Positions 340-44,574 of a stretch of DNA of 61,341 bases are shown piece after piece (positions within the stretch are counted from its first letter, which is position 1; the number at the start of each line of letters is the position of its first letter). The translations under genes and the position numbers were made by a program. The stretch covers positions 1 through 61,341 of the forward strand of contig JAHLWZ010000882.1 in NCBI GenBank assembly GCA_020536535.1. Reading direction: 5' to 3'. Under the pieces are notes generated by a model. That model saw only the letters and a list, made by a program, of their open reading frames with translations. It ran no database searches and was not told where the DNA came from. This DNA is from Pelomyxa schiedti (lineage: Eukaryota > Protista > Evosea).

Positions 340-2079
340 GGACTGTGCCAAGACTGCTGATGAAAGTTAGCCTACCCCATGCCAAGGATCGATGAGACCT
401 TAGACACCCTTGGGGGTTGTGATTGGTTCTCAGGACTCGATATGAAGGCAGGCTACTGGCAGATAGAGCTCACGGAGGAATCTAAGGCAAAGTCAGCATT
501 CCGAACTAGAAGTGGCTTGTACCAGTTCAAGGTGATGCCCTTGATCCTAGCGAAGCTAAGTCCAGCACATTGTCTTGTATATGTGGACGATGTCATTATC
601 TTCTCAAGGGGGAATTTGGATACACACTTGGAGTGGGTGCAGAAAGTCTTTGATTGCCTGAGGAAAGCGGGACTCCAGGTGAATGTAGGCAAGTGCGAAC
701 TTGCCAGGCATCAGCTGAAGTACTTGGGACATCTTGGCAGAGAGGGAATCCTACCAGATCCAGCTAAAGTGAAAGCAGTTCAAGCCATCTTGCCACCAAA
801 GAACCTAGAGGAAGTGAGGAGTTTCATTGGATTGGTAAGCTATTACCGCAGGTTCATCAAGCACTTTGCAGAGATAGCGGCGCCTTTGGAGGAGCTCAAG
901 AAGAAGGGACAAAAATTCCACAGGGAATGCTAGAGCAAGGCGTGTTCCAGAGACTGAAGAACGAGTTGATAAAGTCTCCAGTCCTGAATTATCCCAACTG
1001 GGATAAGGAGTTCTTTGTGGAGACTGATGCTTCAGAGCGGAGCATAGCAGCCACCCTAACGCAGAAGGATGCTTCTGGGAAATCAGTGCCCATTGCCTAC
1101 ATCAGCAGGAAGCTGAGGGACGCCCAGAAGAACTATCCAATGCCTCAGCTGGAAGCTTTGTCAGTGGTGGTGGCAGTGGAGAAATTCGAACCATACTTGT
1201 GGGAAAGGCACTTTACTGTGGTGACAGATGCTCAGGCCTTGTCCAATCTAGCTAAGGTGCAGGGCAGATCCCGTCTTGCACGGTGGGCTTTAGCATTGCA
1301 GGAGTATGATTATTCTGTGGTGCATAGGCCGGGGAAGGAGAATACCAGTGATGGTCTGACCAGGGTATCTCTGGAGGACAAGGAGGGGAGCAAAGGGGAG
1401 CCACCAGCAGTGAAGGCAACTCACCACGTGGGAACAATCTCTGTTGAGGGGTTAGCTGAGGATCAGAAAGCAGATCCTGGGAGCTATGTCTAGGGAGAGA
1501 CCTGGAAGGGATGCCAAGCTGAAGGCTATGGCATGCTACTTCACGGTGGATGAAGGGATTCTATGGCACTTGGACAAGCCTGTCAAGAATCCAAAGAGGT
1601 CTAGGACCAAGAGGATCTGTATTCCCAAAGGTTGGAAGGCAACAGTACTGGAGTTCTACCATGATAGGATCCAAGGTGGGGGGCACAGAGAAGACCTTCC
1701 AAGCGATCGCCAGGAAGTACTGGTGGACTTGCATGTATGAGGATGTGAAGGAGTGGATTGCCTCATGCACTGTCTGTGAACAGCAGAGGAGAAGCCGGGC
1801 ATCTTTCCAAAGTGGCTAGGTCCATACAGAGTGCAGGCAAAGCCCACAGAGTTGACAAGGACACTGGATTTTGGCAGATCAGTGATTTTCCCTACAGTGA
1901 CTGTGGACAGGTTGAAGCCAGTCAAGGAGAGTGACCTCAGGAGGCAGCAAGGAAAGGAACCTTCAACAGCAATGGTGCAGGAAAGGATCATCAGGGAGAG
2001 GATAAGAGGGCCATTCGTGCACTACAAGGTGAAGATGGTAGGTCACAAGTGCAACGAAGGGGATCAGGGTGCATCATGA
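340..2079 (+). mobile_element. pol: Degenerate Ty3/gypsy LTR retrotransposon pol remnant: RT, RNase H, integrase Zn-finger, GPY/F motif, chromodomain-like tail
   Basis: 379-933 MPRIDETLDTLGG..FSGLDMKAGYWQI..YVDDVIIFS (RT). 927-1493 FFVETDASERSIAATL..YLWERHFTVVTDAQAL..RLARWALALQEYDY (RNase H). HDRIQGGGH plus RKYWW..WIASCTVC (integrase H2C2 finger). FPKWLGPYRV near 1805. RIIRERIRGPFVHYKVKMVGH (chromodomain-like). Frameshifts and in-frame stops present. Confidence 0.93.
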
Positions 2080-3226: not shown

Positions 3227-6200
3227 ATGGGTAACACCAACACTGCTTCCAACCAATACCAAGTTCCACCCGCAGACCCTGCCAAATCGTCGAGCAATGT
3301 TACAAAAAGTGCTTGTGTTGACAACATCACGAGCAGCTCACCAACAAGCATCACCACTGCAAAACAAAAAAAGGAGGTTGTGATCGCAGAAGGGCCGCCG
3401 CTCGAGTACATTGTCGCATCCAGGTTCGTGAACAGACACACCGACGCACGCGACAGACACCACGATAAGCTCGCCAAGTCACTCGTTGCCTTCCGTGAAC
3501 ATGTCATACCCGCAATTTCTGAGTGCTTCCAAAGGTTTGTCTGTATTCCCCACACTTCCAACTCCGAAGAAGGTAACTCAAACGGATCCCAATTCAAAAA
3601 TACTCTTTTTTGTGCAGGTATGAAATCTTGCAAAAGGAGTTGTCCGAGATGACAGTGGCACCTGAGGAGAGTGATCTCATGCCGAAAGAGGAACAGGAAT
3701 TTGTGAGGAGTGTGTGCGGCAAAGAGCCTTTTCGAGCCGCTTTATTTGGCTCCACTGGTGTTGGTGAGCCTCTTCTCTTACATTTATTGCTTTCTCCTCA
3801 CATCTCCTTTTTCCTTTCAAATTTTAGGAAAGTCATCACTCATCAACTCCCTTTGTGGGCAGCACATTCTCCCAGTGCAGAGTGGGCATTGCACTGCCAG
3901 AATCTGTGTGTTGAAGTTTGCGGAACCAGAAAACGCGTGCATTCGCAGTGCAAAAGTTGTTGATGGCCACATCGTCACAGGTGAGGTTTTGGAGAGTCTC
4001 ACGAAGTTTTGCACTCGCAGTGAGCCTCTCGCACCCATTGAAGACAGTGAGGCCCCTCCAGAAACACTGGGTGGTAAGCTTAACCCACATCTTGGTCGGG
4101 AGTCTCTGCTCCAAGGTGTGTGATCCCTTTTACCACAAAGCATCACTCTGACCTGGAACAATCAGGTGTCGAGAATGAAGAAACGAAGCGAGACATATTG
4201 ACCACAATAATCATTGTGGAATACCCTGTGCCCCTTTTGAAGGCTGGCATCGAACTTGTGGACTTGCCTGGTCACGCAATAAGTGACACCCTCGGTGCAA
4301 TCATCTTCCCGTTCATGCCTGTGTTCTTGGCAGCTTACCGTCCACACGGTGTCGTTTTCTGCTTTGCAACTGCGGCATTTGAAATACGGGAACAGTATGC
4401 CTTGACAAGTCTGAAAGAAGTCATTTCCAAAGTTTCGGAATACCTCTCAGTTGACGATTACACACCCGATGTTTTCTTTGCCAACACATGTGTTGACATC
4501 AAAAATCTTGCAGATGAGCTGAATGGAGCAGAGCCCAATCTGATAAAAGAGGCTGCTGTTTTAAGAATATATGACAAGCACCTCAAACAGATGCTCCTGT
4601 CACCGGCAACAAGTTCGTTCACCATTCCAAGGGATTTCCAGAAGTGTACATCTTTTTGTTGTGTGAGTGCACACGATTTCTTGTATGACAGTGCATTCAG
4701 CAAGATGACATATGGAATATTCATGGACAAACTTCTGCACTGGATTGTCGCCACCCAACAGAGGCGATGTTGCATGGCACTTGCCCAAATCTGCACCGCT
4801 TCAGGGGCCTTCTTCAGGAATCTCACTGCTTTCTCAAACTGTTCTTGTGAAGAAATCCAGAGGGCAGAAGAAGCTACCAAGCAGGGGATTTTGTGCACGA
4901 GAGAAAGCATCTTGGCTGGGATCACTGAATGCACACAGCAGCTTCCGTTTCTTCTAAATGAAAAGGTGCAGCAAGTGCAAGGTGACTTCCTGAGGGAAGC
5001 TGTTTCTATGCCCTTCGAGTACAACCCAAACTGGCAGGCCACACAAAGACACCAAGCTGAGATGTGTCTTGCAGAAAATCTTATTCCTTGGCTGGAAGTG
5101 AATGTTACTCATCCTGTGATCACCAAAGTTAATTTGAAAATACAGAAAACTGTAGATGAACAGTTCCAGCGACTTTGTGAAACTGAAGATTCCGATGTGA
5201 GAGATTTACTGCAGCTGACAGCTCCTGGTTATGATGCAACAATGCACAGACGTGTATTGACTGCGTCAGTGGGTCTCACTTGCGTAGGTGTACTGGCATC
5301 CATTGTTGGCCTGGTTGTAGCACCATTCACAGGAGGAGCGAGTCTTGCATTATTTTTTGCAGGATTTGGAGTGACTATAGCCGCAAGTGGAGGAGTTTTA
5401 GGGCTGTCTTTTTTTGATCTCTTCTTTCTTGGCCCCAAAAGTCCTGACAACGAGTTCAAAAAACTGATCGCCCAACGAATGCTTGAGTCAGTCTGCACAC
5501 CAAAACAAGTAGAAGCACAAAGAGCGGAACTGGAAACAGTGGCCAAGAGAAGGGCAGAAAAGCTCATTCAGAGACGTCTGAATCGAGTGAAATCCCTATG
5601 TGCACAGAGACTCAGAATGGTAAATACTTGTCCTGAAGACAAGACAACATGGCTCAGACACCATTGGTCATTGATGCGCCTTAGCTTTGGCCAACTGATC
5701 GCCACGACACTTGAGGTACGGGACCAGATGCTGCAAAACCAACCTGTACTTCTAAACTCACCTGGCTCATTGTACTCAAAGGAATCATGGACACAGGAAG
5801 GCATTTTGGAAGACAAACCCGTTTTTGTGAAGGTTGTTGATCTTCGTAAGTGCAACGAAAGTGAGCAGAGGGCGTTCTTTGAGGACTTGCATCACTGGAG
5901 CTACATGGCATCACGCTCTCCGAACATTCTCCCTCTGCAAATGGTATACCAGCAGGCCAACATGTGGTGTGTTGTGTACCCACGGTTCACATACTCATTA
6001 AGGGAGCATATGGAGAGGCACATAGCAACAATGACACTTGCTGATGTGCTTGTGATAGCCAGGAATGTAATAGCTGCTCTCAGGGATCTCCACAACAATC
6101 AGATTGTTCACAGCAATCTCAGGCTGGAGACCATCGTGGTGACCACAGAAAACAACAAGGTGACTCACGTTGCAGTTGCTGGATTCAGCACAATCACAGG

Positions 6201-6558
6201 AGATAGTGGTGGCGAGCAAGGTTACCATGATGATACAAACAGCACCAGTTCTGTTTCTTCCAATGTGGATATTGGCGCAAACCGGCTTTTCTGCACCCCC
6301 AAGGTTGACATATTTGCGTTTGGGGTGATTCTGTCAGAGCTCACGCCCAAGCCCAAACTGTTGCGGTGCCTCACCACGACCACTGACGTTGCTCCTCAGT
6401 TGGCCACCTCTCGTGGAACACCACCCCAGTTGGTGAGTCTGATCAACAAGTGCGTGGCAACTGATCCCAGTCTCCGACCAACAGCTCGGGTTGTGTTCGA
6501 CTCTCTCAATGCTTTGTGCGACCCCCCTCTGGAGATGCTCCCCCAAGATAATGAATGA
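3227..6558 (+). CDS. Dynamin-like GTPase - hydrophobic hairpin - pseudokinase fusion protein, copy A (4 exons; introns 3535-3617, 3764-3827, 4116-4165)
   Basis: N-terminal MGNTNTAS. The spliced P-loop is GSTGV-GKSSLINSLCGQHILP. Also HCTAR (G2), LVDLPG (G3), FFANTCVD (G4-like), hydrophobic VGLTCVGVLASIVGLVVAPFTGGASLALFFAGFGV, and a kinase fold VFVK..HSNLRLETIVV..VAGFS..KVDIFAFGVILSEL..CVATDPSLRPT. All three GT-AG introns restore the frame. Confidence 0.85.
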
Positions 6559-6808
6559 AGTTGGCTCATGATCTTTCATTCAGTAATAAAGTATTTGATT
6601 GCGGTTGTGGCTTGAACCACGAAAGTTTGGAGTACGAGCGGATGGTGGTCCTTTGTGCTCCAAGCTCCACTTGGGGAAATCCTTTCAAGAATCCAATTCG
6701 GTAGAATGGAACTCATGACAGTGTGCGGATTCCTGCATTTCAAATTTTAATTGTTCCACTGTTTTCAAGTTGATTGTTCGCCACATTTTTGCGCAGGAGG
6801 TGGCACGA

Positions 6809-9800
6809 ATGGGGAATATCGGCCCCAAAGCAAAAACTGCACACGCGGCACCTCCAACCACAACACCCACGACACCCACGACACCTCCTGCCACAGCAAA
6901 ATCCAACGCCACCTCCCCCGTCAGTGACAGCACCGTTTGCAGCTCCGCTGCCAACCATTCTGACTCCTACACCGAAACTAGCAGTAAGAAAGAAAGGGAA
7001 GTGAAGCCCATCCACTAGCGGCTGAGACGTTCGTGAGAGGGCACGTAGATGACAGCCTGGGTCCCCACGAAAAGCTCGAAAGATCCATCACCGCCATACT
7101 AGAGCAAACGGTTGTTATTTCCGAGTGCTTCAACCGGTTTGATTATTGCTCTCTATAGGGACAAAAACGAACTAAAATAACAAACCGAAGGTACGAGTTC
7201 ATAGAGAAGGAGCTGGCAACAAAAATACATTTACCAAACGGGAAGTATCTCATGCCACCCGACGACAAGAAATTTGTGAGGAGTGTGTGCAGCAAAGCGC
7301 CTGTTCGAATTGCTTTCTATGGCCATACTGCTTCTGGTGTGCAGACCCCTCTCTTGTTGTTACTCTTCTCAAGTTCTCCTTTAAACCTTCAGGAAAGTCA
7401 TCACTCATCAACTCCCTTTGTGGGCAGCGCATTCTCCCTATGCGGAGTGGATATTGCACTGCCAGAGTCTGTGTGTTGAAGTACGCCGAGAAGGAAAAAG
7501 CCTGCATTCGCACTGCAAAAGTGGTGAATGGGGAAATCCAATATGCTCTAGGCGAGCCTTTTAGCCTGGCAAATGTTCGAAACAACCAAGAACTCCAAGG
7601 CAATATAATCAAGTACCTTGCCCGGGAAACTCTGCTACCGGAAGAATCAGGGGCTGCGAACGATAAAAGAAAAGGAGATATAGATGTGGTGGATATAGTG
7701 ACCACAATAGTCTTTGTTGAATACCCTGTGCCCCTTCTGAAGTCTGGCATCCAACTTGTGGATCTGCCTGGCCACGCAATAAGTGACCCCATTGGAAAAC
7801 CTATCTCCAAATTCATGCCTTTGTTCCTCGGAGCTTATTGTCCACATGGTGTCGTTTTCTGCTATAAAACGGCGGTATTTGACGGAGATGAACAGTGCGC
7901 CTTGACAAAGATGGAACAAGTACTTTTTCAGGCTTCAACAGGTCTCTCAGCAGATGAATACATACCAGAGGTTTTCTTTGCCAATACCCATGTGGACCTT
8001 GGTAATATCCTGGATGAGAGTCAAGGGTCCGATCTCGAACTGATACAAGATAATGATATTACAACGTCATACCAGAAACTCCTCGAGCATATGCGTCGGT
8101 CACCAGCAACGAGATCGTTCACCATTTCAGATGATTTCCAGAAGTGCACATCTTTTTGTTGTGTGAGTGCACACGACTTCTTGTATCACCATGAGCTCCG
8201 CACATTTCAACCATTCATGGACAAATTTTTGCACTGGATCATCGCTGTTCAGCAGCGGCTGTGCTGTCGGGCACTCACGCAAATATCGTCAGCATCAGGA
8301 ACCTTCTTTGAGAATCTTGCCGCATTGCCCTGCTCTCTTGAAGATATAGAGACAAAAAGAAAAACTACCACTGAGAGGATTGAGACTGGGAAAGCAACCG
8401 TCTTGGCTAGGATCGCTCTCCGCACAAAGGATCTTCCAAATCTTCTGATACATAAAGTAGAGGAAATAAAAGATGAGTTCTTGGAGAAAGCAATTGCTCT
8501 ATCCTTTGAGGAAACCCCCAGGTCGATAACATCAGACCAAGCCCAGCGATATCTTGAGGAAAAGCTTGCTCCTTGGCTAGCAGTAAACGTTGTTCATCCC
8601 GTGATTACTGACCTGCGTCAGCGAATCCAAGACGATGTCAAAGCAGAATTTCAAAGAATTATGAAAATGGAAGACAATGACGTGAGAGAGCTGCTCCAGG
8701 TTGCATCTCCTACCTATAGTCATATAATGCGCCGCCTCGCATACGCTGGCGTAGCGACTGCGGCTGGTCTTAACTTTGCTGCGTTCTTGGCTGCAGCTAT
8801 TTGCGTACCATTCACTGGGGGAGCCAGTGCACCAGTGGCAGTGATACTTGGAGTTAGTGCGTGTTCACTTGCAGGAGTTACAAGAGCAATTGCACCTCAC
8901 ACGGGGGAACAGCCCATTGACACTGCCTTTAAAAAGAATGCTGCACAACGCATGCTTGACAAACTATGTGACCCAATACAGGTAGAAAAACAACGAAAGG
9001 TACTGGAATATGTATGCTGTGAACGTACAACTCGGTATTTCCAGAGACATCTAGATAGGGTGACATGCCTCGGTCAACATAGAGAGCAAATGAAAAAGAC
9101 TGATGGTGTAGTAGAACTGGAGGATCTGCGTCTCCTTTTTGGAACACTGAATGCCGAGGCACTTGAGATGCGGGACTCCATTTTTCTAGGGCTGACAATA
9201 CAAACACAAACTTCATCTACTACAACTACTTCGAGCAGTAGCACTATAACTACTGCAGCTGTAGCCGACGGCGGCAATGAATTGGCGGCTGCGAAAGCTT
9301 GGGAGTCCGCCGTATTGGCCGACGACACCGACACCGACACGGGCACAGGCACGGGCACGGGCACGGGCACAAACGAAGGTGCCACTCCCGCTCCAACGGC
9401 ACCGGGGGAGCCCATAATGACAACGGCAGTGAAAACGGAAACAGCTACTTCTGCCCCTGCACCTTCAACTACGACTACAACTACCACCTGCTCAGTGAAT
9501 AGCAGCCAAACTGTTTCTATGAAGGTTGATCTGAGAAAGCGCAACAAAGCGTACCGGAGTGCCTTCTTTGAGGACCTCTCTCACTGGAACCAAATACAGC
9601 ACTGCTCTACCCACGTTCTGCAGCTGAAGAGGGTATTCAGAGATAATAACCCCAGGGTATGGTGCATGGAGCACCCACAGTTCACACTCACGCTCAAGGA
9701 CTACCTGGAGAAGCACATACGCAACATGAAGCTCTCCGCAGCACTGGATATAGCCAAGACAATAATCACCGCTATAAGAGACATCCACGAATTCGGGATT

Positions 9801-10190
9801 GTATGCGGCAATCTTAAGCGGGAGAACGTTGTAGTGACCACAGAAGGTGACAAGGTGACCACTGCACTGGCCGGCTTTGAAGTTACAGACATCAAAGAAT
9901 CCAACGTCTCGGGCATAGATGTGAACCGGTTTTCCTGCTCCCCAAAAGTTGACATATTTGCATTTGGAGTGATTCTGTCAGAGCTCACACGCCACTTCAC
10001 AACCACTGGTGTTCCTCAGTTGCTCGCTCCTGGCACACCACTCCAATTAACAAATCTCATCAACCAGTGTGTGACTACCAAGCTCAACCAGAGGCCATCA
10101 GCTTGGAAGGTACTTGAAAGTCTTAGTAAGATACACTGTGCGGAGGAGGATCGGCCGGCGCAGAATCTGGGAACAGGCAACTCTAATTAG
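6809..10190 (+). CDS. Dynamin-like GTPase - hydrophobic hairpin - pseudokinase fusion protein, copy B (tandem paralogue; frame break near 6985-7018)
   Basis: MGNIGPK start. P-loop GHTAS-GKS across intron 7337-7392. YCTAR, LVDLPGHAISD, FFANTHVD, hydrophobic AAICVPFTGGASAPVAVILGV, a T/S-rich insert, CGNLKRENVVV, ALAGFE, KVDIFAFGVILSEL. Collinear with copy A. Confidence 0.82.
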
Positions 10191-10394
10191 GGTCACCCCC
10201 AGAAAACAGTTGCAAAAAGGGCTTGATAATAAAAGGAGCTTACCCTGAGCGCATCGGCTGTCTAACTCGTAACCACACCACCAGCCTGGTTAGTGATGAA
10301 TAAAGGGAAAAATAAATAAAAAGATCTAGTATCTTTAGCTGGGGTTTTGTCACTGAGTTGTTGGGTATGGGTGAGTTGTGTCAACCATTGCCAT

Positions 10395-10625
10395 TCTGCA
10401 CCCCCAAAAGTTTTCCTTTTTGCATTTGGGGTGATTCTGTCCGAGCTTACACCCAAGCCCAAACTGCAGTGGTGCCTCGCCACGACCACTGGTGTTGGCA
10501 CTCAGTTGGCCACCGCTCATGGGACACCACCTTTGTTGGTGAATCTCATCAACAGGTGTGTGGCAACTGACCCCAGGCTCTGACCAACAGTATGATATAA
10601 TCAGTGCTTTGTGCCCTCCTCTGAG
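10395..10625 (+). pseudogene. Remnant of a third GTPase-pseudokinase paralogue (kinase C-lobe only)
   Basis: Near-copy of 6292-6530 (PKV.LFAFGVILSELTPKPKL..TTT.V..QLAT..GTPP.LVNLINRCVATDP). The CGA of copy A is TGA here (10581-10583). No upstream domains are present. Confidence 0.85.
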
Positions 10626-10986: not shown

Positions 10987-13900
10987 ATGGCAGCACAAGC
11001 GGCAGTTGCGTTGCAGAAGAAAATTTTCTCTCGATGGGTGTCACAAAAGATCAGCCGAGTGACAGGCAAAGCCATTGACGACTGTGTCAAGGCAATGACT
11101 GATGGTCTTACTTTGATTGCTCTGTTGGAGGCTCTCAGTGAGAAAAAGTGCACTGCTAGGCTGGTTAAGGCTCCGAAAATGAGGCCTCAGGTTCTAGAGA
11201 ATGCTACTGCTGCAATTGCTTTTGCCAAGGTTGTTTACTTTATCTGCATTATAACTTCTCTTTGGGTTGAATAACTACTGTACTTACTTTTCAAATTGGG
11301 TAGGAATGTGGTGTTCAGCTGAGATTGTGGCCATCGAATTCTGACCTTGTTGATGGTGTCGAGCAGCAAGTTCTTGGTCTCATCTGGGGTATTATGCAGA
11401 GATTCATGAAGGTAAATTTGGCTCCCTCTTCATTTAATAACGTTGGTATTAGTTCACTGATGAGGAAGGACATGGGGCAGACCTTAATGCCAAAGATGCT
11501 CTCATGACCTGGTGTCAGAATACCACAAGGGGATATCCAGATGTACATCTGGACAACTGGAAAACAAGCTGGCATGATGGAATGGCATTGTAAGTATTTG
11601 TATTTTTCATGTTTCCACTTAGCTGTCATATACCCCAAGATGTGCCATTATTCACAAATACCGTCCCTCTCTTATCAACTGGGAGTCATTAGAAAGGACC
11701 AATAAAAAGGTTAATATACAAGCTGCCATGCATGCTGCTCACAAGTGGGACTAGTTCTTTTTCAAACTATCTTTCGTAATTTTTCTTTAAGGTACTTTAT
11801 GTTGGAACAGTACATCACACCAGACGAATTCTTGAAGTTGGATGACAATAGGTATCTCGGTAAATTTTTATTCTTTTTTTGCTAAATCAAACCCAAAAAG
11901 TATGGTTGTATATGTAAGGTAGTGTTTCCCATTATTTAGACACAAGTGTAATTGAGTTGAAGTGAATACTACTATGGAATTTCAGAGCAACGCAAATTGG
12001 ATCTCGCTGGCAGAAGGATCTCCAAAGTCATCAAGCTGACCAAAGATAATGACGCACTTCGCGCAACATATGAAGCTCGTTCTGAGGAACTTCTGCAAAG
12101 AATATCACAGGCCGGAAGTGCTCTCTCTGACTACACAATTGACAATACAATGGAAGGTCCTTCTCCTTGCTTTCTCTTTGACCGGCCCACATCCAAAGGT
12201 GCCAAAACACGCTTGAACAAGTTCTACGATTATAAAATGGCCGAAAAGAGTGATATCATGATTGCTCAGCTTGATCTTGAAGCACTATTTAATACTATTG
12301 CCACAATACTCACACACAACCACCGACCAGAATTTGTACCCCACCACAAGCTTTGTGATATTGCAAATGCCATGGCAGGGCTCGAGGAGGTAGAACAAAA
12401 GAAGAAGGTAATCCTTTCGTAGAATGACCTGCTCTCAGATTCATTTGACAGGTGGCACTGCATGCGGAACTTAACAGGCAGTTGAAACTCCAAAAATTGA
12501 ATGAGCACCACGAAAAACGGACAAACAAAATTGAGGCCTGGATTTCGGCAAAACAGGAATACCTGTCCACACCACCCCCCGTAACTAGTGCAAGCACTGC
12601 ACAGCTGCAAGTACGTCTACCTCACTCTACAGTGTGTTGGATTTTTCTAAACGCAATAAGCTACGGTTGCTCAAGGCGTTCGATCAAGAACTCGCTCAGA
12701 TTGGCACAACACATGTTACCCCTCTTGTAAAACTCGGGAAAGAGCTTGCTGCTGGTAAATACCAAAACCTAAAGGATGTTACAATCCGTGAGCAAAGAGT
12801 AGAACAAGGATTGCAGGATCTCAAACTCACAAGGTTACAAACTTTGTGTGTTACATCCATAAACATCTCCGCAGCGCCGCTCTTTTACCAGTTTTGAATG
12901 ACCTATGTGCCATTTATGATTACCAGCAATGGGTAAAAGACACTCTTGCTGGAATGGAAGACCTTCTGTTCGGGTTCACTCTTGAAGAAGTTTTGGCTTT
13001 TGAAAAGTCCTTGTCCGATCTTTCTTCCACATACACAAAAGACTCCAAGGCCAAGATGTCTGCATTTAAGGATTACGAAGTATCTGAAAAATATCTCTTG
13101 TTAATCCCCTTATCCTCTGTAAGGCTCACATGGATTCCGTGCCCACCCTCGATCCAGACTATAAAGCAGGTGTTATTGGCCTTGTTGAGTCTATCACCAA
13201 TGAACTGGAAGGTGGAATTCAAAGTACCAAGTTAGTTGTCTTTAATTGGGGCTGGATAACACACTGTAGGGCAATTTATGAAGCCGAGCTAGAACTCCAG
13301 AAGCAGAAAGACAGAAAGTGTAAAGCCTTTGCTGATCTTGTCGAACCCCTGGTAGCCATGATTACTGCTAACAAGGCGAAAATCACTGCACCAGGCTTGA
13401 CATTTGAAACACAATTGGCCCTAGTTGAGTATGTAATACCATTTGCCATGAACCTTTACCAAACTTTCATTAGGGAACGTATTGCTGCTCTGGACGACGA
13501 TGGTGCATCCCTTCCCGAAATTGCAGCAGCATTCACTGAACTGGAGGAATCTGGAATAACAAGTACTGGTCCCACAGTTCCATTGTTGTAACCATTTTTA
13601 AAGATATAACTCACACATCTGTAACTCTACGGGATGCTGAGTTGATGTGGCAACAATGGCAGTCCTTCCTCACAAAGAAGAAGGCAATGCTTATGGAAGA
13701 AATTGCGCGCTCTGCCACATTTGGTGTCACCCCGGCACAAATTGAAGGTTTGTCTTCCTCTCGTTCTTATTGGACCTCACCACAACAACCAGAAATACAA
13801 TCCACTTTCACTCAGTTTGACCGGAACCAATCCGGGATGCTGGATATGAAGGAACTCAGAGCATGCCTTTATTCCTTGGGTGAAGAAAAGACCTCGAAGG

Positions 13901-16728: not shown

Positions 16729-16934
16729 CACATTAATTTACGGTGTAAAAAAGCAAATTGAGAATCTGTTGGGTGTGGTTCCCCGGCTGATGCCTCTAGG
16801 TGGCAATCATAAGTGGTATTCAGTAAAACAAGCTAGCGAATGCTTTTCACCAGGTTTTAACTAGGGCTTTGTGCCAGGCTCTGGATGAGATCGCTCTTTC
16901 CGATTTCTGGGAAAGGAAATTCGCCGCTCTCCGG

Positions 16935-17942
16935 ATGGACACAGGGTACTGCGTAAACATTGACGACGTTGTGGCTGCACATGCTCGAATAAAGACGTAT
17001 ATACACAAGACACCCATAATCCGTTGCCACGCGCTGGACGAGGCCGTAGGTGCCGAGTGCTACCTCAAGTGCGAGAACATGCAGAAGGTCGGCGCGTTCA
17101 AGTTCCGCGGGGCCTGCAACGCCGTGATGTCGCTGTCCGACGACGACGCCCGCGCCGGCGTCGCCACGCACTCGTCGGGCAACCACGCCCAGGCGCTCGC
17201 GCTGGCCGCCCGCATGCGCGGCGTCCCCGCCTACATCGTGATGCCGCGCACGGCGCCCCGCGTCAAGTCGGACGCGGTCGCGGCCTACGGCGGCCGCATC
17301 ACCTTCTGCGAGCCGACGCTGCGGGCGCGCGAGGAGGCGCTGGCCCGCGTGGTGGCCGAGACCGGGGCGCGGGTCGTGCACCCCTACAACGACGCGAGGG
17401 TCATCGCCGGCCAGGGCACCTGCGCCCTCGAGCTCCTGCAGGAGGTCCCCGACCTCGACGCCGTCATCGCCCCCATCGGCGGCGGCGGCCTCCTCAGCGG
17501 TACGGCCATCGCCTGCCGCTCCCACGCTCGCCCCTCCGGCTCCTCGGCCTCGGCCTCGCCCGGTGGCCGCGTCAGGGTGATTGGGGCGGAGCCGCTGGCG
17601 GCGGACGACGCGTGCAGGTCCAAGGAGACGGGGGTGCTGCAGCCGGCGGTGGACGGCTGCGCGTCGCGGACCGTGTGCGACGGCCTGCTGACGTCCATGG
17701 GGAGCCTGACGTGGCCTATTGTGCGGGACTGCGTGGACGAGATCGCCACGGTGCGCGAGGACAGCATCGTGGCCGCCATGAGGTTCGTGTGGGAGCGGGC
17801 AAAGATCGTCGTGGAGCCGTCGGGCTGCACGCCACTTGCGGTGCTGTGGGAGCGCAAGTGCGGACTTGTGGGAAAGAAAGTCGGTCTCATACTGAGCGGT
17901 GGAAACGTGGACTTGGGCAAGTTGCCTTGGCAAAATAGTTAG
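16935..17942 (+). CDS. SRR: PLP-dependent serine racemase / threonine dehydratase family enzyme, intronless
   Basis: KCENMQKVGAFKFRGA (PLP lysine), THSSGNHAQA, HPYNDARVIAGQGT, PIGGGGLLSG, VVEPSG, ILSGGNVD. The N-terminus MDTGYCVNIDDV resembles the start of eukaryotic SRR. Confidence 0.9.
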   Translation: MDTGYCVNIDDVVAAHARIKTYIHKTPIIRCHALDEAVGAECYLKCENMQKVGAFKFRGACNAVMSLSDDDARAGVATHSSGNHAQALALAARMRGVPAYIVMPRTAPRVKSDAVAAYGGRITFCEPTLRAREEALARVVAETGARVVHPYNDARVIAGQGTCALELLQEVPDLDAVIAPIGGGGLLSGTAIACRSHARPSGSSASASPGGRVRVIGAEPLAADDACRSKETGVLQPAVDGCASRTVCDGLLTSMGSLTWPIVRDCVDEIATVREDSIVAAMRFVWERAKIVVEPSGCTPLAVLWERKCGLVGKKVGLILSGGNVDLGKLPWQNS

Positions 17943-18058
17943 CTTCTTTTGTCCAGCACAGCACCAACAAAGCATCTCCTCCCTAGCTCTCTTTTTACTT
18001 CTTAGAAATCAATCATTTTTTCCACAACCGCCACAACGTAAGGAAGCAGTTTCCGCGC

Positions 18059-27268: not shown

Positions 27269-29553
27269 ATGTTGGACGTAGAGTTGGAACCGGAGTACAT
27301 GGAGAACATGAACTCCGTGGACGGTGCTGATTGTTGCCCCCGTTCGACGGAAAACGGCGGTGTTGAAGAGTCACCCTCGTCGTCGGAAACGGCTTCACCA
27401 AAGTCTCCTTTCCCGCTCTCTCCGCGGACTGTTACGAGATTGGTGGTTGTGGGTAGAAAAGGAATACTTCCTGCGACACCAGTTCTCTCCAACAAAGTAG
27501 TACTTGTACCTTTCATTCAAGGTGTATTTCCCCTAATCTTTCCTCTACACAGCACTGTCCTCCCCTAAATATAATATCTGGGGGCACCCCTCTTTCTCCA
27601 CTGCCTGTCTCAACTACAATCACCACGACAACCGCTTCTACCTCAAAAAATACACAAAGTAGCACCGAGGTACTTTACTCACTCAAAAAAAATCCCGTTG
27701 AACTCCCTCAAGAGAGTTATGGCTCGTTTGCAGCGTGCTCTCCGTAGAATGATGCGGACTCCAGAAGCACTTCCATTTTGCCGACCGGTTGATCCCGTTG
27801 CTTTACACATTCCAGACTATTTCGATATAATAAAGAACCCAATGGATTTGGGTACCGTAATGGTATGAGACCCAAAGGATGTTCTTCCTCTTAACCAAGC
27901 ACAGGATAAAGCTAAAAACGGGGAGCTCACAGCAGCGGATGATTTTGCCAAGCATATGCGGCTTGTATTCTCCAATGCTATGCTCTACAATCCGGTCGGG
28001 CACCCTATTCACATGTGCGATCCTCCCTTCTTCCCGTACTTGTCTTAGACTTACAGATACGCGAAAAACTTAGCGAATCAGTTCGAGAGAGATTATGCTC
28101 GCATAACTCTGCCCAAAAAACCTCACACTACAAGATCGACCTATCACCAAACGGATTACAATGCCTCGAAGTCTATTCAACCTTCTTCTTTGGTCAAAGG
28201 CGATGACGACGACTCGGACGACGGAGATGGAGACGTAAAAGATGAAGACTACCAGGACACGGAACCTCGTCGCAAGTACTTAAACACCCTTTACTGATCC
28301 TAGACTTACCAGAAAATAGAAAGCACAAAGAGACAAGAGGCCGTCCACGTAGTGAAAGCCACAAGGCGAAGAAAATTGCCTCCTCACGTAATACCTTGGG
28401 TCATCCAAGTTCTGAGCACCCGAGGGGTAGTACCCAGTCTCGCACATCGCATCCGCCTGTTGATGGTCACGTCAATGGGCCCAAACCTACCGAGCCAGTG
28501 TCAAACACGCTTGTAGAACTACGGAAGGCGATGTCTTCTCTTCAGCACGAAATCGAATCACTCCGAACCCAACAAAATCCCCAACCTGGTCTTCGAGGAA
28601 ACTCTGGGACCCCGAGTCCGTCCGACAGTGGCCCTAGTGGGAACAACAATCATTCTCGACCAAAAGACAGCAAGCACTCCAGAAGACCAACGCGCCCACG
28701 GATTAATACACATCCCATGTCTCTGCAGGAGAAACAAAAACTGGGTGAGAACATCAAGTCTTTGCCTGTGGACAAACTTGGGCAAGTTGTCAACATCATC
28801 CAAGAGCGTGCGCCGCTAAAAACCCAAAGTGACGGTGCTGAGTTTGAGATAGATTTGGAGATTTTAGACAATGGTATCTCTTCCACACGCTTTTACTATC
28901 TGCATAACATTTCCCTAGCCACTTTGCGAGCCCTTGAGAGTTATGTTCTTAGTGTGTCACCTAATCCCACCGTACGCAGTACCAGCCGGAAGCGCTCACA
29001 GCCCTCCAAATCCCTAAGTGCTGCGCGAATACTAGAACAAGCACAGGCAACTGCTATCGATACAAGACAACAAATACTTGATGTGGAAAGACAACTAGGC
29101 GAGTTAGAGGAAAGGATGGGCTCACGCCGCAAACAACCCGGTGAAGTGAAGAAACCTAGAACGAGTAATGACCCTCAAGCAACCCAAGCTGTTCCTGCTG
29201 TGACTTCTCCTCAGTCTCCATCCGCAGAACTAATGGCAATACCGAAAGTGGAAACCGATAGCAGTGAAAACGCAGTTCAACACACGGGGACAGTAACATC
29301 AGGCAAACAACCGAGTTCTAACAACCTGTCGCCGCCAAATGAAATAGGACCTTCGTTCATTCCCCCAAAGGGAACTGGGGACGGGGCCTGTGCAGTACCA
29401 TCTTTGGCGAACACACTGAGCCCGGAAAACATCAACCCCAACACCGCTTCAGTTTCAGACTCTGAGTCGTCCAGTGACTTCTTCAGCAGCTCCAGCGATT
29501 CAGAGGTAGGTTCCCCCCCCTTATACCTTACGCCATTATACTATTATGTATAG
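27269..29553 (+). CDS. Single-bromodomain + extra-terminal (ET) domain protein (GTE/BET-like), multi-exon; 3' end uncertain
   Basis: [43 protein letters not shown] (bromodomain). [37 protein letters not shown] (ET). Confidence 0.92.
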
Positions 29554-39187: not shown

Positions 39188-40952
39188 ATGGATGTGCTGA
39201 CACCCGGTTGTCACAACTACGGTGCATTACGAAACCGTGTGATGATGCAGGCTCTTTCACAACTGGAGGAGGGGAACACTGAGGGCGCAATTCGTGCAAT
39301 TTCGGATGCTTGTGAGCAGTTCGATAGTTGCGCTTACGATCCATCCCCGAAAAACCAATTTGCTCACAGACATACGAAACAAACAAAAAAAACTACCAAA
39401 CGAACAAACTAACAAACGAAAAAAAGGACAAACATGTGCATCACGTGGGGGTGATCAGGACGAGGAAGAGATGTGTTATCTCCCTGGGTTGATACTTCTT
39501 CACGGTCTTTGTCTTCTAACCAACAATCACGTTGCCATCTCTCGGCGCATTCCTTCAAACCTATCAAATACCTTTTCGCGTACAATCTCCACTGCCCTTC
39601 CAGACCTGAGCCACTATTGCCACCTTGTGATCGTGTCAGCAAACACCACAATGATGAGTATCACGGAAGAGTGGGACGCTCTGTTTGCAGCAGCCTCTTC
39701 TGCGGCGTCATTCGGCGCCACTGTTAATCCGCAAATACCGACTCAACATGGGAGTGGGTCTCACAGTGTTCACCGAGGATCGTGGGCATGTAAGCTGTAT
39801 GTTGCTTTGTGGACAACCCTCTGCTTTGAGAGAACATCATGTGAGCCACTTTGGTTGGAACTCTCCAATTCACAGGTTCTTCCTCGTTGTCAGGACAGTA
39901 ACAGTGAAGCTGTTCAACTCTTGCCATCTGCCTCTCTGGCCCTCCTTGGTGTATGTTGCCTTGGTGGCGTTTTCGGGCTGGAAAAGGATTACAACCGTGT
40001 GGTTTCACTCTTCCGGAAGGCTGCCGATTCTGGAAACTCCATGGCAATCAACGGCCTTGCCGTGTGTTACCACAATGCATGGGGCGTCGACTTCAAGGAT
40101 ACCGCCTTGGCACTGACCCTTTGGAAGAGGGCCGCGGAGGCTGGAAATTGCAAGGCAATGTTCAACCTTGCTGTATGTTACCACAACGGAACTGGCGTTT
40201 ACAAAGACTTTAACCACGCTGTATCTCTTTGGAAGAGAGCTGCTGAAGTCGGGCATTACATGTCAATATACCATCTGAGTTTGTGCTACAAAGAAGGCCA
40301 TGGTGTACCCCAGGATATGGACCTGTCCCTCTCACTTATCAGGAGGGCTGTTGATGCTGGTGACACTGATGCCATGTTCGACCTTGGTGTGCGTTACAGA
40401 AAAGGCGATGGTGTAGATAAAGACTTGAACAAGGCAGTGTCACTCTACAGGAGGTCGGCAAATGGTGGAAATTCCAGTGCGATGAACAGCCTTGCTGCGT
40501 GCTATAAAGGTGGCCATGGTGTTGAGAAGGATCTTATCAAGGCCGTGGCTCTTTTCCAGAGGGCATCTGATGCTGGAAATACATGTGCAACACACAGCCT
40601 CGCTTGGTGTTATGATGCTGGGGAGGGTGTTGAAAGGAACATCCACCAGGCACTGTCACTTTACAGGAGGGCTGCCGATGCCGGCAATAGCAACTCGCTG
40701 CACAACCTTGCAGCTTGTTACAGGACTGGTGATGGCGTTGTTGCTGACCTGAAGTTGGCAATCTCGCTTTACATGAAGGCTGCCGAGGCTGGAAACCCAG
40801 CTTCCACACAGTACATTGGTCAGTGCTACGCAAAAGGACAAGGTGTTCACCGGGACCTCAGGATGGCTGTGGCATACTTCAAGAGGGCTGCTGACATGGG
40901 ATACAAAGATGACTCCCACACACTCGACACCCTTATCAACGAAGACAACTAA
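39188..40952 (+). CDS. Sel1-like repeat (SLR) protein 1, about 8 repeats, with a conserved N-terminal domain; one 5' intron
   Basis: Repeats of A..L(F/Y)..AA..GN..AM..LA.CY..G.GV.KD. N-terminal YLPGLILLHGLC..WACKLYVALWTT..SCEPLWLELS. Confidence 0.92.
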
Positions 40953-41008
40953 TGTGCCGGGCAATTCACCAAATCGAACACTTCCACTTATCAAATAATC
41001 GAAAACGG

Positions 41009-42683
41009 ATGAGCAACGACGACGGCGGCAGCATGCAAGTTCACCGAAGCGCAGCAGCGTGTCAACAAAAGAGATGCAAGTTGGTGATGGAGGCGATTTC
41101 GCGGATGGAGGTGGGCGACGCAGCGGGCGCAATTCGTCTTGTTTCGGATGCTTGCACCTTGTTTGACACCTGTCACATTATTGATGGTACCGCATTCCAT
41201 TTCATTTCCTCCTAGCCTCCACTTGTATTAAAAAAAAAAAGGAGAAACAAGTGGGCTTGAAGAAGGTGAGGAAGAGCTGTGTTACCTCCCTGGGTTGATA
41301 CTTATTCATGGTCTGTGTATTCTCACAAATGATCAAGTCTCATTGTTCCCACACATTCCTCCAAACCTGTCGATTTTTTTTTCACGAGCCATTTCTGCTT
41401 CTACTGCTGAAATGAGATACTACTGCCATGGTGTGTTGTTGTCTGCCAACAAAAGTTTGGTACTGTGTGCGGAGGCAGAGGAGACGACAACGAGGATTGC
41501 AGAAGAATGGAATTCCCTTGTTACAGCAGCTGAATCATTCGCATGCAATAATGTTGATTCAACAACACCAATTCAACGAGAAGACGAAGACCATGACGAC
41601 ACCAACAATCAACGAGGATCGTGGGCACACAAGCTCTTTGTTGCCTTGTGGACAACTTTCTGCTTGGAGAACACATCATGTGAGCCACTTTGGTTGGAAC
41701 TGTCAAAGCATCATCACATCGGAGATGACAGTTCTTCTTCCTCTTCAGCGCAACAACTCTTGCCGTCTTTGTCTCTGACACTCCTTGGCATGTGTCACTT
41801 TTACGGAATTGCCGGTTTTAAAAAGGATGTTAACTGTGCTGTGTCACTTTGGAGGAGAGCTGTGGATTCTGGAAACGCAATGGCAATGAACAGCATTGCT
41901 GTGTGTTATAACTATGGTTGGGGTGTAAGCAAGTGCATCAACCAGTCGGTGTCACTTTACAGGAAGGCTGCTGATTGTGGAAATGCCAAAGCCTTGTTCA
42001 ACCTTGGCTTCTGCTTCGAAAATGGTGAAGCTTCTGCGAGGGACATGAAGCAGGCAGTCTCACTTTATCAGCGGGCTGTGGCTGTTGGAAGTACATCAGC
42101 AATGTTCAATCTTGCTGACTGTTACCTAAAGGGCGACGGTGTTGACAAGGATGTGAACATGGGATTATCACTTATCAGGAGGGCTGCAAATGCTGGCGAT
42201 TCGGCCGCTCTGGCAGACCTTGGTGTGCGTTACAAGTTTGGTCATGGTGTTGACAAAGACATCAAAACAGCCTTGTTACTTTGCAGGAAGGCTGCTAATG
42301 TCGGAAGCTCCAAAGCAATGAACAACCTTGCGTTGTGCTATGAAGAGGGTGTTGGCGTTACCCAGGATCCCAGGACGGCAATGTCACTGTTCAGGAAGGC
42401 CTCTGATGCCGGAAACTCCACCGCAACATGCAACCTTGGCCTGCGTTATGAATTAGGTAAAGGCGTGGAGAAGGACATCAACCGGGCCGTGTCACTTTAC
42501 ATGAAGGCTGCTGATGCTGGAAACAGTGGGGGAATGTACCACCTTGGCAAGTGTTTTGAGAATGGCCAAGGCGTTCAACGCGACACCAGATTGGCAGTCT
42601 CACACTACAAGAGGGCTGCCAACATGGGATACCAGAAGGCCATTCGCCATGTAGCCGCCCTGCTCGAAAGATACAACCCTTGA
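41009..42683 (+). CDS. Sel1-like repeat protein 2 (tandem paralogue)
   Basis: Exon 1 MSNDDGGSMQ..CKLVMEAISRMEVGDAAGAIRLVSDACTLFD, then the same N-terminal domain and SLR repeats. Confidence 0.92.
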
Positions 42684-42799
42684 CGAAATTAGATCAAAAC
42701 TAACTTATTTTTATTGACCCTTGTTATTATTGTTACAATACAATAAAACACCCCCCAGTTTTTTCACGGAAATCCTCAACCGCCAACTCGGCTGATCAG

Positions 42800-44574
42800 A
42801 TGGACAACAACACATCGCCCGTGCCGACGAGCAACGGCGTCGGCAGCCGCGCGCAAGCTCACAGAAGCGCAGCAGCGTGTCAACAAACGAGATGCAAGTT
42901 GGTGATGGAGGCGATTTCGCGGATGGAGGTGGGCGACGCAGCGGGCGCACTTCGTCTTGTTTCGGATGCTTGCACCTTGTTTGGCACCTGTCGCGTTATT
43001 AGTGGTCTGGTTCGGCACTCCTTGAAAATCATTTCATTTCATTTCCTTTGCTCACCTCACATTCATTATCACCTGGATGCCACTCCTTATTACAATTACA
43101 ACCAACTACTTACAAAAAAAAAAAAAAAAAAGGAGAGACAAGTGGATTGAATGAAGAAGAAGATATTATTTACCTCCCTGGGTTGATACTTATTCATGGT
43201 CTGTGTATTCTCACAAATGATCAAGTCTCCCTGTTCCCACACATTCCTCCAAACCTGGGGAATTTGTTTTCGCTAGTCATTTCTATTTCAGCCATAGAAA
43301 TGAGGCACTACTGCCATGATGTGTTGTTGTCTGCCAACAAAAGTGTGCTGGCGTGTGAGGAGGCTGAGGTGACAATGAGGATTTCAGAAGAGTGGGATTC
43401 TATTGTGGCAGAAGCCACATCACTGGCACACAATAGTGTTGATTCAACAACACCAATTCAACAAGAAGACGAAGACCATGACGACACCAACAATCAACGA
43501 GGATCGTGGGCACACAAGCTCTTTGTTGCCTTGTGGACAACTTTCTGCTTGGAGAACACATCATGTGAGCCACTTTGGTTGGAACTGTCAAAGCATCATC
43601 ACATCGGAGATGACAGTTCTTCTTCCTCTTCAGCGCAACAACTCTTGCCGTCTTCGTCTCTGACACTCCTTGGAATGTGCCACTTTTACGGAATTGCCGG
43701 TTTGAAAAAGGATGTCAACTGTTCTGTGTCACTTTGGAGGAGAGCTGTGGATTCTGGAAACGCAATGGCAATTAACAGCATTGCTGTGTGTTACAACCAT
43801 GGTTGGGGTGTCAGCAAGAACATCAACCAGTCGGTGTCACTTTACAGGAAGGCTGCTGATTGTGGAAATGCCAAAGCCTTGTTCAACTTTGGTTTCTGCT
43901 TCGAAAATGGTGAAGTTTCTGCGAGGGACATGAAGCAGGCAATCTCACTTTATCAGCGGGCTGTGGCTGTTGGAAGTACATCAGCAATGTTAAATCTCGC
44001 TGAATGTTATAAAAGTGGGGATGGTGTTGACAAGGATGTGAACATGGGATTATCACTTATCAGGAGGGCTGTTGACATTGGTGACCCTGAGGCACAGTAC
44101 TTTCTGGGTTTGCGTTACAAAACGGGCTGTGGTGTTGACAAAGACATCAAAACAGCCTTGTCACTTTACCAGAAGGCGTTAAAATTTGGAAGCTCCAAAG
44201 CAATGAACAGCCTTGCGCTGTGCTATGAAGAAGGTGAGGGTGTTGTCCAGGATATCAAAATGGCAGTGTCACTTTACAGGAAGGCCTCTGATGCCGGAAA
44301 TTCCACTGCAACATGCAACCTTGGTTTGTGTTATGAATTTGGCAAAGGTGTGGAGAAGGATGCCAACCAGGCTGTGTCACTTTACATGAAGGCTGCTGAT
44401 GCTGAAAATGATTTGGGAATATACCGCCTTGGGGAGTGTTTTGAGAATGGCTGTGGTGTCCAACGGGACATCAGAATGGCAGTCTCACACTACAAGAGGG
44501 CTGCCAACAAGGGATCCCAGAGAGCCATAAACCAACTTGCCACCCTGTTAAGAAGAATTGGATACAACTCCTGA
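42800..44574 (+). CDS. Sel1-like repeat protein 3 (tandem paralogue, close to copy 2)
   Basis: Exon 1 MDNNTSPVP..CKLVMEAISRMEVGDAAGALRLVSDAC, followed by SLR repeats. Shares a 191-bp identical tract with copy 2. Confidence 0.92.

Follow-up and report, generated by a model that had tools for sequence, protein, structure and literature searches.

Two tandem genes and a third-copy relic in Pelomyxa schiedti join a dynamin-like GTPase to a pseudokinase and belong to a wider eukaryotic family

The 61,341-nt window analyzed here, from the forward strand of Pelomyxa schiedti contig C882 (JAHLWZ010000882.1; all coordinates refer to the whole window), carries at 3227-10590 (+) two head-to-tail genes for fusions of a dynamin-like GTPase with a pseudokinase, followed by a short relic of a third copy. 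The favored reading, held at a probability of roughly 0.55, is that these are two tandem members and one relic of an expansion specific to Pelomyxa, within a broader eukaryotic family not previously described, wherein a GTPase of the bacterial dynamin-like protein (BDLP)/mitofusin class is joined to a C-terminal TKL-like kinase, and that the proteins would act at membranes by the mechanism set out below. The gene structure, domain identity, fold, motifs, copy number, phylogeny, and distribution that enter this reading were established in the present analysis. Dynamin-like GTPases and pseudokinases have each been well studied; no description of a dynamin/BDLP/mitofusin-type GTPase with a hairpin fused to a kinase or pseudokinase was found in the searchable literature. 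The genes represent a new architectural variant of dynamin-like GTPases, not members of a known named family, and their relatives already lie unannotated in public databases.

Gene 1 (3227-6558, +) is complete, with 1044 aa encoded in exons at 3227-3534, 3618-3763, 3828-4115, and 4166-6558; its three introns (83, 64, and 50 nt) are all GT-AG, and the spliced frame is open throughout. Gene 2 (6809-10190, +; exons at 6809-7136, 7191-7336, and 7393-10190) follows the same plan, and its exons 2 and 3 match the public protein Pelo_13411 (P0001) at 100%, the public model of which begins downstream of the MG exon, at MPPDDKK. Splice sites were placed from the sequence and from paralog collinearity. 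The proposal of a first-pass annotation of this DNA, made from the sequence alone, that the GTPase and kinase parts form one unit is borne out by their location within a single unbroken exon, ~2.4 kb long in gene 1 and ~2.8 kb long in gene 2, the latter encoding ~930 aa from the P-loop lysine through the stop; the longest open frames in the genes extend for 812 and 967 codons. Four RNA-library contigs (at least 99% identity; single-cell RNA-seq run, 6 kb compared) cover gene 1 at 4922-6566 only, and the contig at 5286-5911 bridges the hairpin and the pseudokinase, such that transcription of gene 1 has modest RNA-library support.

The GTPase is recognized by the Pfam model Dynamin_N in both genes (E 1e-14 to 4e-17), above the curated cut-off of 27 bits (55-63 bits for gene 2; 40.5 bits for gene 1 exon 3, E 3.8e-10). 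In gene 1 the GTPase core occupies 3748-4497 (+) and comprises G1 (GSTGVGKS, 3748-3835, interrupted by intron 2), the G2 threonine in HCTARI (3887-3904), G3 (DLPG, 4261-4272), and a G4-like NTCVD (4483-4497), while gene 2 (+) has GHTASGKS as G1 and DLPG at 7761-7772 as G3. G1, G2 (the threonine in CTAR), and G3 are intact in both genes; G4 reads T-C-V-D in gene 1 and T-H-V-D in gene 2 versus T-K-x-D in other family members, with the threonine and aspartate kept. The best PDB sequence match of the N-terminal part is the BDLP of Nostoc. Structure comparison with Foldseek likewise placed BDLP (2j69) first among PDB entries (E 6e-13, 716 columns), followed by IniA, SynDLP, the Campylobacter dynamin-like protein pair, MxB, mitofusin 1/2, Drp1, and OPA1; the VIA structural aligner matched MFN1 (5yew) at Z 20.0 over 308 aligned positions within model residues 1-631, and every language-model neighbor of the part without the kinase belongs to a bacterial dynamin family. 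Septin, AIG1, Roc, and IIGP models of Pfam gave sub-threshold P-loop matches only, and no Roc or COR match was returned for either gene at E up to 1. Given the Foldseek and VIA matches and the language-model neighbors, the GTPase is assigned, from sequence and predicted structure, to the BDLP/mitofusin class rather than to septin, AIG1, or Roc, in line with the dynamin/BDLP/mitofusin class originally proposed for this domain.

AlphaFold2 models were obtained for the gene 2 product (45-row family alignment; mean predicted local distance difference test score, pLDDT, 77.7; predicted template-modeling score, pTM, 0.78) and for a full-length paralog, P0003 (pLDDT 84.4, pTM 0.84). Both present, in order, a G domain, long outgoing stalk helices, a hydrophobic hairpin, returning helices, a linker, and a confident kinase fold; the P0003 model alone adds a disordered tail (residues 1-37) and four helices ahead of the G domain, the P0001 model being without the first exon. 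The hydrophobic segment spans ~60 residues around APFTGGAS in gene 1 (aa 609-670, 5248-5433, +; turn at 5320-5343), where the mean Kyte-Doolittle hydropathy over a 19-residue window reaches 2.3, and around VPFTGGAS in gene 2 (8730-8894, +; 8805-8828). Its placement between the outgoing and returning stalk helices of the models is that of the BDLP paddle, and a hydrophobic segment lies at a similar position in all seven further kinase-bearing members checked, weakly so in P0015 of Gonapodya. The linker ahead of the kinase is long and Ser/Thr-rich in the gene 2 model, corresponding to a low-complexity stretch at about 9186-9500 (+). As a separate observation, the stalk following the hairpin (gene 1 5434-5727; gene 2 8895-9185) has a pairwise ratio of nonsynonymous to synonymous substitution (dN/dS) of 1.17-1.38 in three of five paralog pairs, over ~90 codons and with significance not assessed.

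A second potential membrane element lies at the N-terminus. The start of gene 1, MGNTNT (3227-3244, +), extends to MGNTNTA and agrees with the N-myristoylation consensus applied here (M-G-{EDRKHPFYW}-x-x-[STAGCN]-{P}), a rule that predicts the modification from sequence only; such starts occur in five of the six full-length Pelomyxa copies (gene 1, P0003, P0004, P0006, and the copy on contig C824). The MG-N starts ascribed to the locus by the first-pass annotation therefore hold for gene 1 (3227); gene 2 also has one, on an exon that in the window is out of frame with the remainder of the gene, and the relic has none.

The C-terminal domain is a kinase fold in both genes (gene 1, 5797-6555, +, PK_Tyr_Ser-Thr 1.3e-15; gene 2, 9510-10187, +), with Pkinase/PK_Tyr_Ser-Thr matches at 1e-9 to 1e-15 (57.9 and 34.3 bits versus a cut-off of 23.1). 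Its best PDB sequence match is the JAK2 JH2 pseudokinase; Foldseek ranked JAK2 JH2 highest among kinases (E 4e-7) and also returned Src, FAK, and BRAF, and VIA matched kinase domains at Z 19-20, RAF kinases being high among the fold matches. The catalytic loop HRDxKxxN has become HSNLRLET in gene 1 (6109-6132; its K and N are likewise changed, to R and T) and CGNLKREN in gene 2 (9804-9827), DFG has become GFS (6178-6189) and GFE (9870-9881), respectively, and the Gly-rich loop and APE are absent from both, while the beta3 lysine (VxxK) is kept. Neither gene holds the full active-kinase set of Gly loop, VAIK lysine, HRD aspartate, catalytic-loop asparagine, and DFG aspartate. With the catalytic base, the metal-binding aspartate, and the Gly loop gone, the domain is predicted to be catalytically dead; the loss of both catalytic aspartates, noted at first pass, is confirmed by alignment with active paralogs, and G1-G3, the hairpin, HSN/CGN, and GFS/GFE can all be read in the window as they had been described.

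The two genes are part of a larger family within the P. schiedti genome. A six-frame search recovered at least 10 family copies on contigs C882, C1748, C602, C824, C492, C733, C406, and C495, including four tandem copies and one more on C602, against a background of about 30 Dynamin_N matches genome-wide. In a quick maximum-likelihood tree with long branches, all Pelomyxa copies form one clade (support 100), within which eight dead-kinase copies make up a clade whose sister group is the pair of active-kinase copies on C492 and C824 (support 100). The kinase of the C824 copy has GxGxxS, VAIK, HRDIKLEN, DFG, and APE all present, and that of the C492 copy (P0006) has GxGxxS, VAIK, HRDIKLEN, and APE, with DFS in place of DFG and hence the aspartate kept. 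Because paralogs with active motifs are sister to the eight dead-kinase copies, kinase death is derived, the window copies descending from an active-kinase ancestor. Gene 1 is sister to Pelo_7646 on C602, and gene 2 groups with the C1748 copy and another C602 copy; since genes 1 and 2 are not each other's nearest kin, the pair predates a segmental duplication. In the gene 1 lineage dN/dS is 0.40-0.50 in both the GTPase/stalk and the pseudokinase. Copy number, the C602 array, the relic, the tree, and dN/dS all agree with the tandem birth-and-death evolution of a multi-copy family that had been suggested from the window. Also on C602, the public model Pelo_7644 (P0005, G000:C602:1-3416) has an active-looking kinase and a helical region placed upstream of a family member without its own MG start; it represents either a genuine fusion or two genes merged in annotation.

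Beyond Pelomyxa, word-index protein searches with the gene 2 exon and with the N-terminal part of an active paralog returned Pelomyxa proteins only. An exhaustive hidden Markov model search, using a profile of the N-terminal 672 positions with the kinase excluded, matched 645 proteins at E up to 1e-3. Many of these are 880-1135 aa long, align over both the G domain and the stalk, and have a Pkinase domain at the C-terminus. Proteins built in this way are found in Acytostelium subglobosum, Gonapodya sp., the rotifers Rotaria and Didymodactylos, and metagenome proteins; four metagenome relatives carry a C-terminal RING finger. In A. subglobosum, four adjacent family genes (DF837604.1:363008-376545; 863, 902, 836, and 888 aa) are accompanied by further members on the same contig, and a full kinase is found in one of the four, the other three giving a faint kinase match or none; from this array, kinase decay within a tandem cluster has arisen independently in a dictyostelid.

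The same profile, free of kinase sequence, also matched animal proteins bearing the NCBI name "dual serine/threonine and tyrosine protein kinase-like" (DSTYK-like), from Glandiceps (E 2e-9), Ptychodera, and Branchiostoma, at 2.2e-9 for P0071, 8.6e-9 for P0076, 1.8e-7 for P0104, and 1.5e-7 for P0098; the first three carry the name themselves, and P0098 is unnamed, with its cluster member P0159 so named. All have Dynamin_N (1e-16 to 1e-20); in the sequences that were read G1 and G3 are intact, and some of these are without kinase motifs. The comparison concerns proteins named DSTYK-like in hemichordates and amphioxus. They resemble the Pelomyxa proteins in the order of Dynamin_N GTPase, helical region, and C-terminal kinase on a chain of ~900-1000 aa, and weakly and partially in the last stalk helix before the kinase; they differ in the absence of MG starts and, by hydropathy, of the hydrophobic hairpin, a feature shared by most of the remaining members that bear a kinase. 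The tree groups the Pelomyxa copies with Acytostelium, Gonapodya, and metagenome proteins and puts the DSTYK-like rows in a separate clade, which argues against orthology. The DSTYK link drawn by the first-pass annotation was thus a genuine homology lead, the Pelomyxa genes being, as far as the profile and tree indicate, distant relatives of the DSTYK-like proteins. Its further suggestion that the Pelomyxa genes are a mirror image of DSTYK (live GTPase, dead kinase) does not fit, since the family holds every combination of live and dead halves: besides the DSTYK-like proteins with intact G1/G3, some of them without kinase motifs, two Pelomyxa paralogs retain kinase motifs, and the Pelomyxa clade lies outside the DSTYK-like clade.

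From the features of the family we infer membrane attachment, GTPase activity, a role for the pseudokinase, and a biological setting. By analogy with BDLP, mitofusins, and atlastin-type proteins, an N-terminal myristate and the hydrophobic hairpin at the stalk tip would hold the protein on a membrane; GTP loading of a still-competent G domain would let G domains pair across or along membranes, and GTP hydrolysis would drive the stalk between closed and extended states, whereby a bilayer could be tethered, bent, or fused. The pseudokinase, predicted to be incapable of phosphotransfer, most likely serves as a docking or allosteric module; in the gene 1 lineage it has stayed about as constrained as the GTPase after catalysis was lost. 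Fast duplication and decay would suit proteins working where a membrane is contested or changeable, be it that of the phagosome, of bacterial prey, or of the endosymbiont compartment; P. schiedti is described as packed with prokaryotic endosymbionts (PMC10579272). An immunity-type or symbiont-handling setting is plausible in light of the tandem turnover, relics, high dN/dS, and sister genes with caspase, patatin, or RING domains, and a surveillance or effector role would be conceivable there.

Two of those sister genes carry effector domains on the same chassis within P. schiedti. On contig C927 (L033:1191-5414), a single open reading frame (ORF) of 1407 codons combines Dynamin_N with a kinase that retains HRD and DFG and with a patatin lipase bearing GTSTG, and has a hydrophobic segment at the hairpin position. 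In P0008 (2008 aa), on C406 (22000-31999), Dynamin_N and a degenerate kinase that reads HGD and AGYG are followed by a long middle region and, at the C-terminus, by a caspase (Peptidase_C14, 2.4e-37); its gene model is collinear with the DNA across introns of ~40-85 nt, and it has no hydrophobic hairpin. A bold and doubtful extension of the setting proposed above would make the chassis an old eukaryotic module for cell-autonomous conflict, namely a membrane-bound GTPase switch with swappable caspase, patatin, or RING domains, in which the window copies, free of effector domains, would be fast-evolving sensors or decoys at phagosome or symbiont membranes and animal DSTYK a vertebrate relic.

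The coexistence of active and dead copies within one clade, together with effector-bearing members built on the same chassis, also invites the idea that the dead-kinase copies are regulatory partners, pairing through their G domains or between pseudokinase and kinase with the C492 and C824 copies and with the patatin and caspase fusions so as to tune or gate them, by analogy with KSR-RAF and JAK JH2-JH1. The kinase matches are compatible with such a role: JAK2 JH2 leads the PDB sequence matches and belongs to the best kinase-fold matches, where RAF kinases also rank high. The window copies, however, are just 28-33% identical to the active paralogs, and each has its own membrane anchor and G motifs, so that on paper no partner is needed; regulatory pairing is accordingly considered unlikely.

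The hairpin itself raises a different possibility, in which the proteins would be membrane-killing effectors whose ApoL- or MLKL-like pore-forming hairpin is freed by a pseudokinase switch and permeabilizes pathogen or host membranes. The Pfam ApoL model passes its cut-off of 25.9 bits on the hairpin of P0004 (30.9 bits, E 2.5e-7), the sole Pelomyxa copy to do so, falls below it on gene 1 (20.1 bits, E 4.9e-4), and gives no match on gene 2; the caspase and patatin members would suit a killing role. ApoL matches nevertheless occur in just two of 45 family members, and the position of the hairpin within the stalk, equivalent to the BDLP paddle and the mitofusin anchor, offers a simpler account. 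Kinship of the hairpin with ApoL was therefore rejected, the 231-aa hairpin piece of P0004, when used as a query, having also returned nothing at E up to 0.1, and pore formation is kept as a weak and highly improbable rival.

Returning to the favored reading of membrane-acting GTPase-pseudokinase fusions, several observations weigh against it. Replacement of the G4 lysine by Cys or His may weaken guanine binding, and the hairpin is modeled with low confidence (pLDDT about 30-50 in both models). A G-domain homodimer prediction (P0001 residues 1-300, two copies) scored 0.00, which counts neither for nor against the reading. The RNA evidence consists of assembled contigs, none of which crosses an intron and which may contain DNA. 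The nearest paralog of gene 1, P0004 (G000:C602:9436-11719), reads GGGET at the P-loop (Lys to Glu), has a deletion that takes G3, and shows IGVG for G4, yet retains the hairpin and pseudokinase; with neither the G1 lysine nor G3 left, at least this copy can dispense with GTPase activity. The dN/dS values are high for a housekeeping machine, reaching 0.66-0.90 in every domain between gene 2 and its nearest paralogs. Gene 2 moreover begins MGNIGPK, with proline where the N-myristoylation rule requires S, T, A, G, C, or N, its exon 1 is frameshifted in the window sequence, and the RNA-library run that covers gene 1 yielded no contigs for it.

Several of these points could instead signify decay, the locus being a dying cluster beside a retroelement in which gene 2, the relic, and perhaps gene 1 are pseudogenes or becoming so. 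The frameshift, elevated dN/dS, and missing RNA contigs of gene 2 would be expected of such a cluster, as would the broken GTPase of P0004 and the reverse transcriptase fragment at 379-930. The relic (10394-10590, +) points the same way: it consists of ~200 bp of kinase C-lobe corresponding to gene 1 aa 959-1020, and matches gene 1 6289-6484 at 84% DNA identity (blastn) and 76% identity by tblastn (E 3e-21). The third remnant of the first-pass annotation is hence a real remnant of a family copy, limited to part of that C-lobe and without the MG start or GTPase attributed to it. Open frames as long as those of the two genes nonetheless cannot survive by chance, and gene 1, given its clean splice sites, its dN/dS of 0.40-0.50, and its RNA-library contigs, looks sound. 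Decay of the whole cluster is therefore regarded as quite unlikely.

For gene 2 alone, decay falls only somewhat short of an even chance; the gene is possibly decaying, as judged from its frameshifted exon 1, poor myristoylation motif, dN/dS, and absence from the RNA contigs. The frame of exon 1 (6809-7136, +) does not continue into the rest of the gene and meets a stop at 7016-7018. The deep DNA run X3 (depth 23) has the same sequence as the window; in a low-depth contig from run X4 (depth 3.7), seven extra bases after 7002 put exon 1 back in frame, which speaks against decay. Since the deep run agrees with the window and the variant is in frame, the break is either confined to one haplotype or a very recent lesion. 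Compared with the window, the X4 contig (6465-7177) also lacks 9 bases at 6863, gains 3 bases at 6537, and carries five substitutions; it may come from another haplotype or from a nearly identical copy of the spacer between the genes and gene 2 exon 1. A 35-nt GTAAGA...CTAG "intron", which would also restore the frame of exon 1, was rejected because the other introns measure 50-83 nt and the 7-base length variant explains the break.

Under the favored reading of a GTPase-pseudokinase family acting at membranes, the nearest described systems each share part of the architecture. Nostoc BDLP (PDB 2J68/2J69) and MFN1/MFN2 likewise have Dynamin_N with G1-G3, a neck and trunk formed from helices flanking the G domain, and a hydrophobic element that inserts into the membrane, located where the stalk passes from its outgoing to its returning helices; the Pelomyxa protein, at ~14-19% identity, differs in being eukaryotic and cytosolic with a myristoylation-type start, in the replaced G4 lysine, and in its C-terminal kinase fold of ~250 aa, which occurs in no described BDLP or mitofusin. 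ROCO proteins (LRRK2 and the Dictyostelium Roco kinases) also combine a GTPase with a TKL-type kinase in a single polypeptide and are multi-copy in Amoebozoa, and the kinase of an active paralog has LRRK2 as one of its best PDB matches, yet their GTPase is Roc/COR (Ras-like) rather than dynamin-like and they have no membrane hairpin. JAK JH2, KSR, and MLKL parallel the window genes in keeping a kinase fold under some constraint after catalytic loss; kinship is limited to the kinase superfamily, and their partner domains are FERM-SH2 or a four-helix bundle, as opposed to the dynamin-like GTPase found here. Mx, GBP, and IRG proteins are dynamin-superfamily or related GTPases that also form lineage-specific tandem arrays with high dN/dS and pseudogene relics, and are not orthologous to the Pelomyxa family. 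With apolipoprotein L the resemblance is the weak match on the hairpin, set against its presence in so few members.

The family connects a fast-turnover, amoeba-specific array with caspase, patatin, and RING fusions and with animal DSTYK-like proteins. Human DSTYK (dusty, RIPK5) is a disease gene, linked in published work to urinary tract malformation and spastic paraplegia SPG23; that work assigns no function to its large N-terminal region, and no paper on a dynamin-like N-terminus of DSTYK was found in the literature searched. If this region, two thirds of DSTYK, is a relic of a dynamin-like GTPase, a testable idea for DSTYK at membranes would follow; were the conflict-module proposal also true, DSTYK would have a membrane-remodeling ancestry. 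The array is in addition a candidate for the membrane-level handling of prey or of the obligate Pelomyxa endosymbionts.

Elsewhere in the window, two overlapping ORFs at 379-1493 (+), the first with a partial RVT_1 domain (379-930, 1.5e-19), mark a degraded retroelement ~1.7 kb upstream of gene 1, in agreement with the retroelement neighbor originally noted. A second tandem gene family occupies 39294-44574 (+), where three consecutive ORFs (552, 462, and 508 aa) are full of Sel1 repeats (E 1e-59 to 4e-67), and an ORF at 28396-29553 (+) carries a BET (bromodomain extra-terminal) domain (E 7e-16). At 17001-18000 the GC content is 0.69 versus ~0.45 elsewhere; the long ORFs on both strands there (16857-17975) have no Pfam match, and the stretch is probably a low-complexity repeat. 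Directly after the relic, an ORF at 10987-11274 (+) is, by eye, a calponin-homology candidate.

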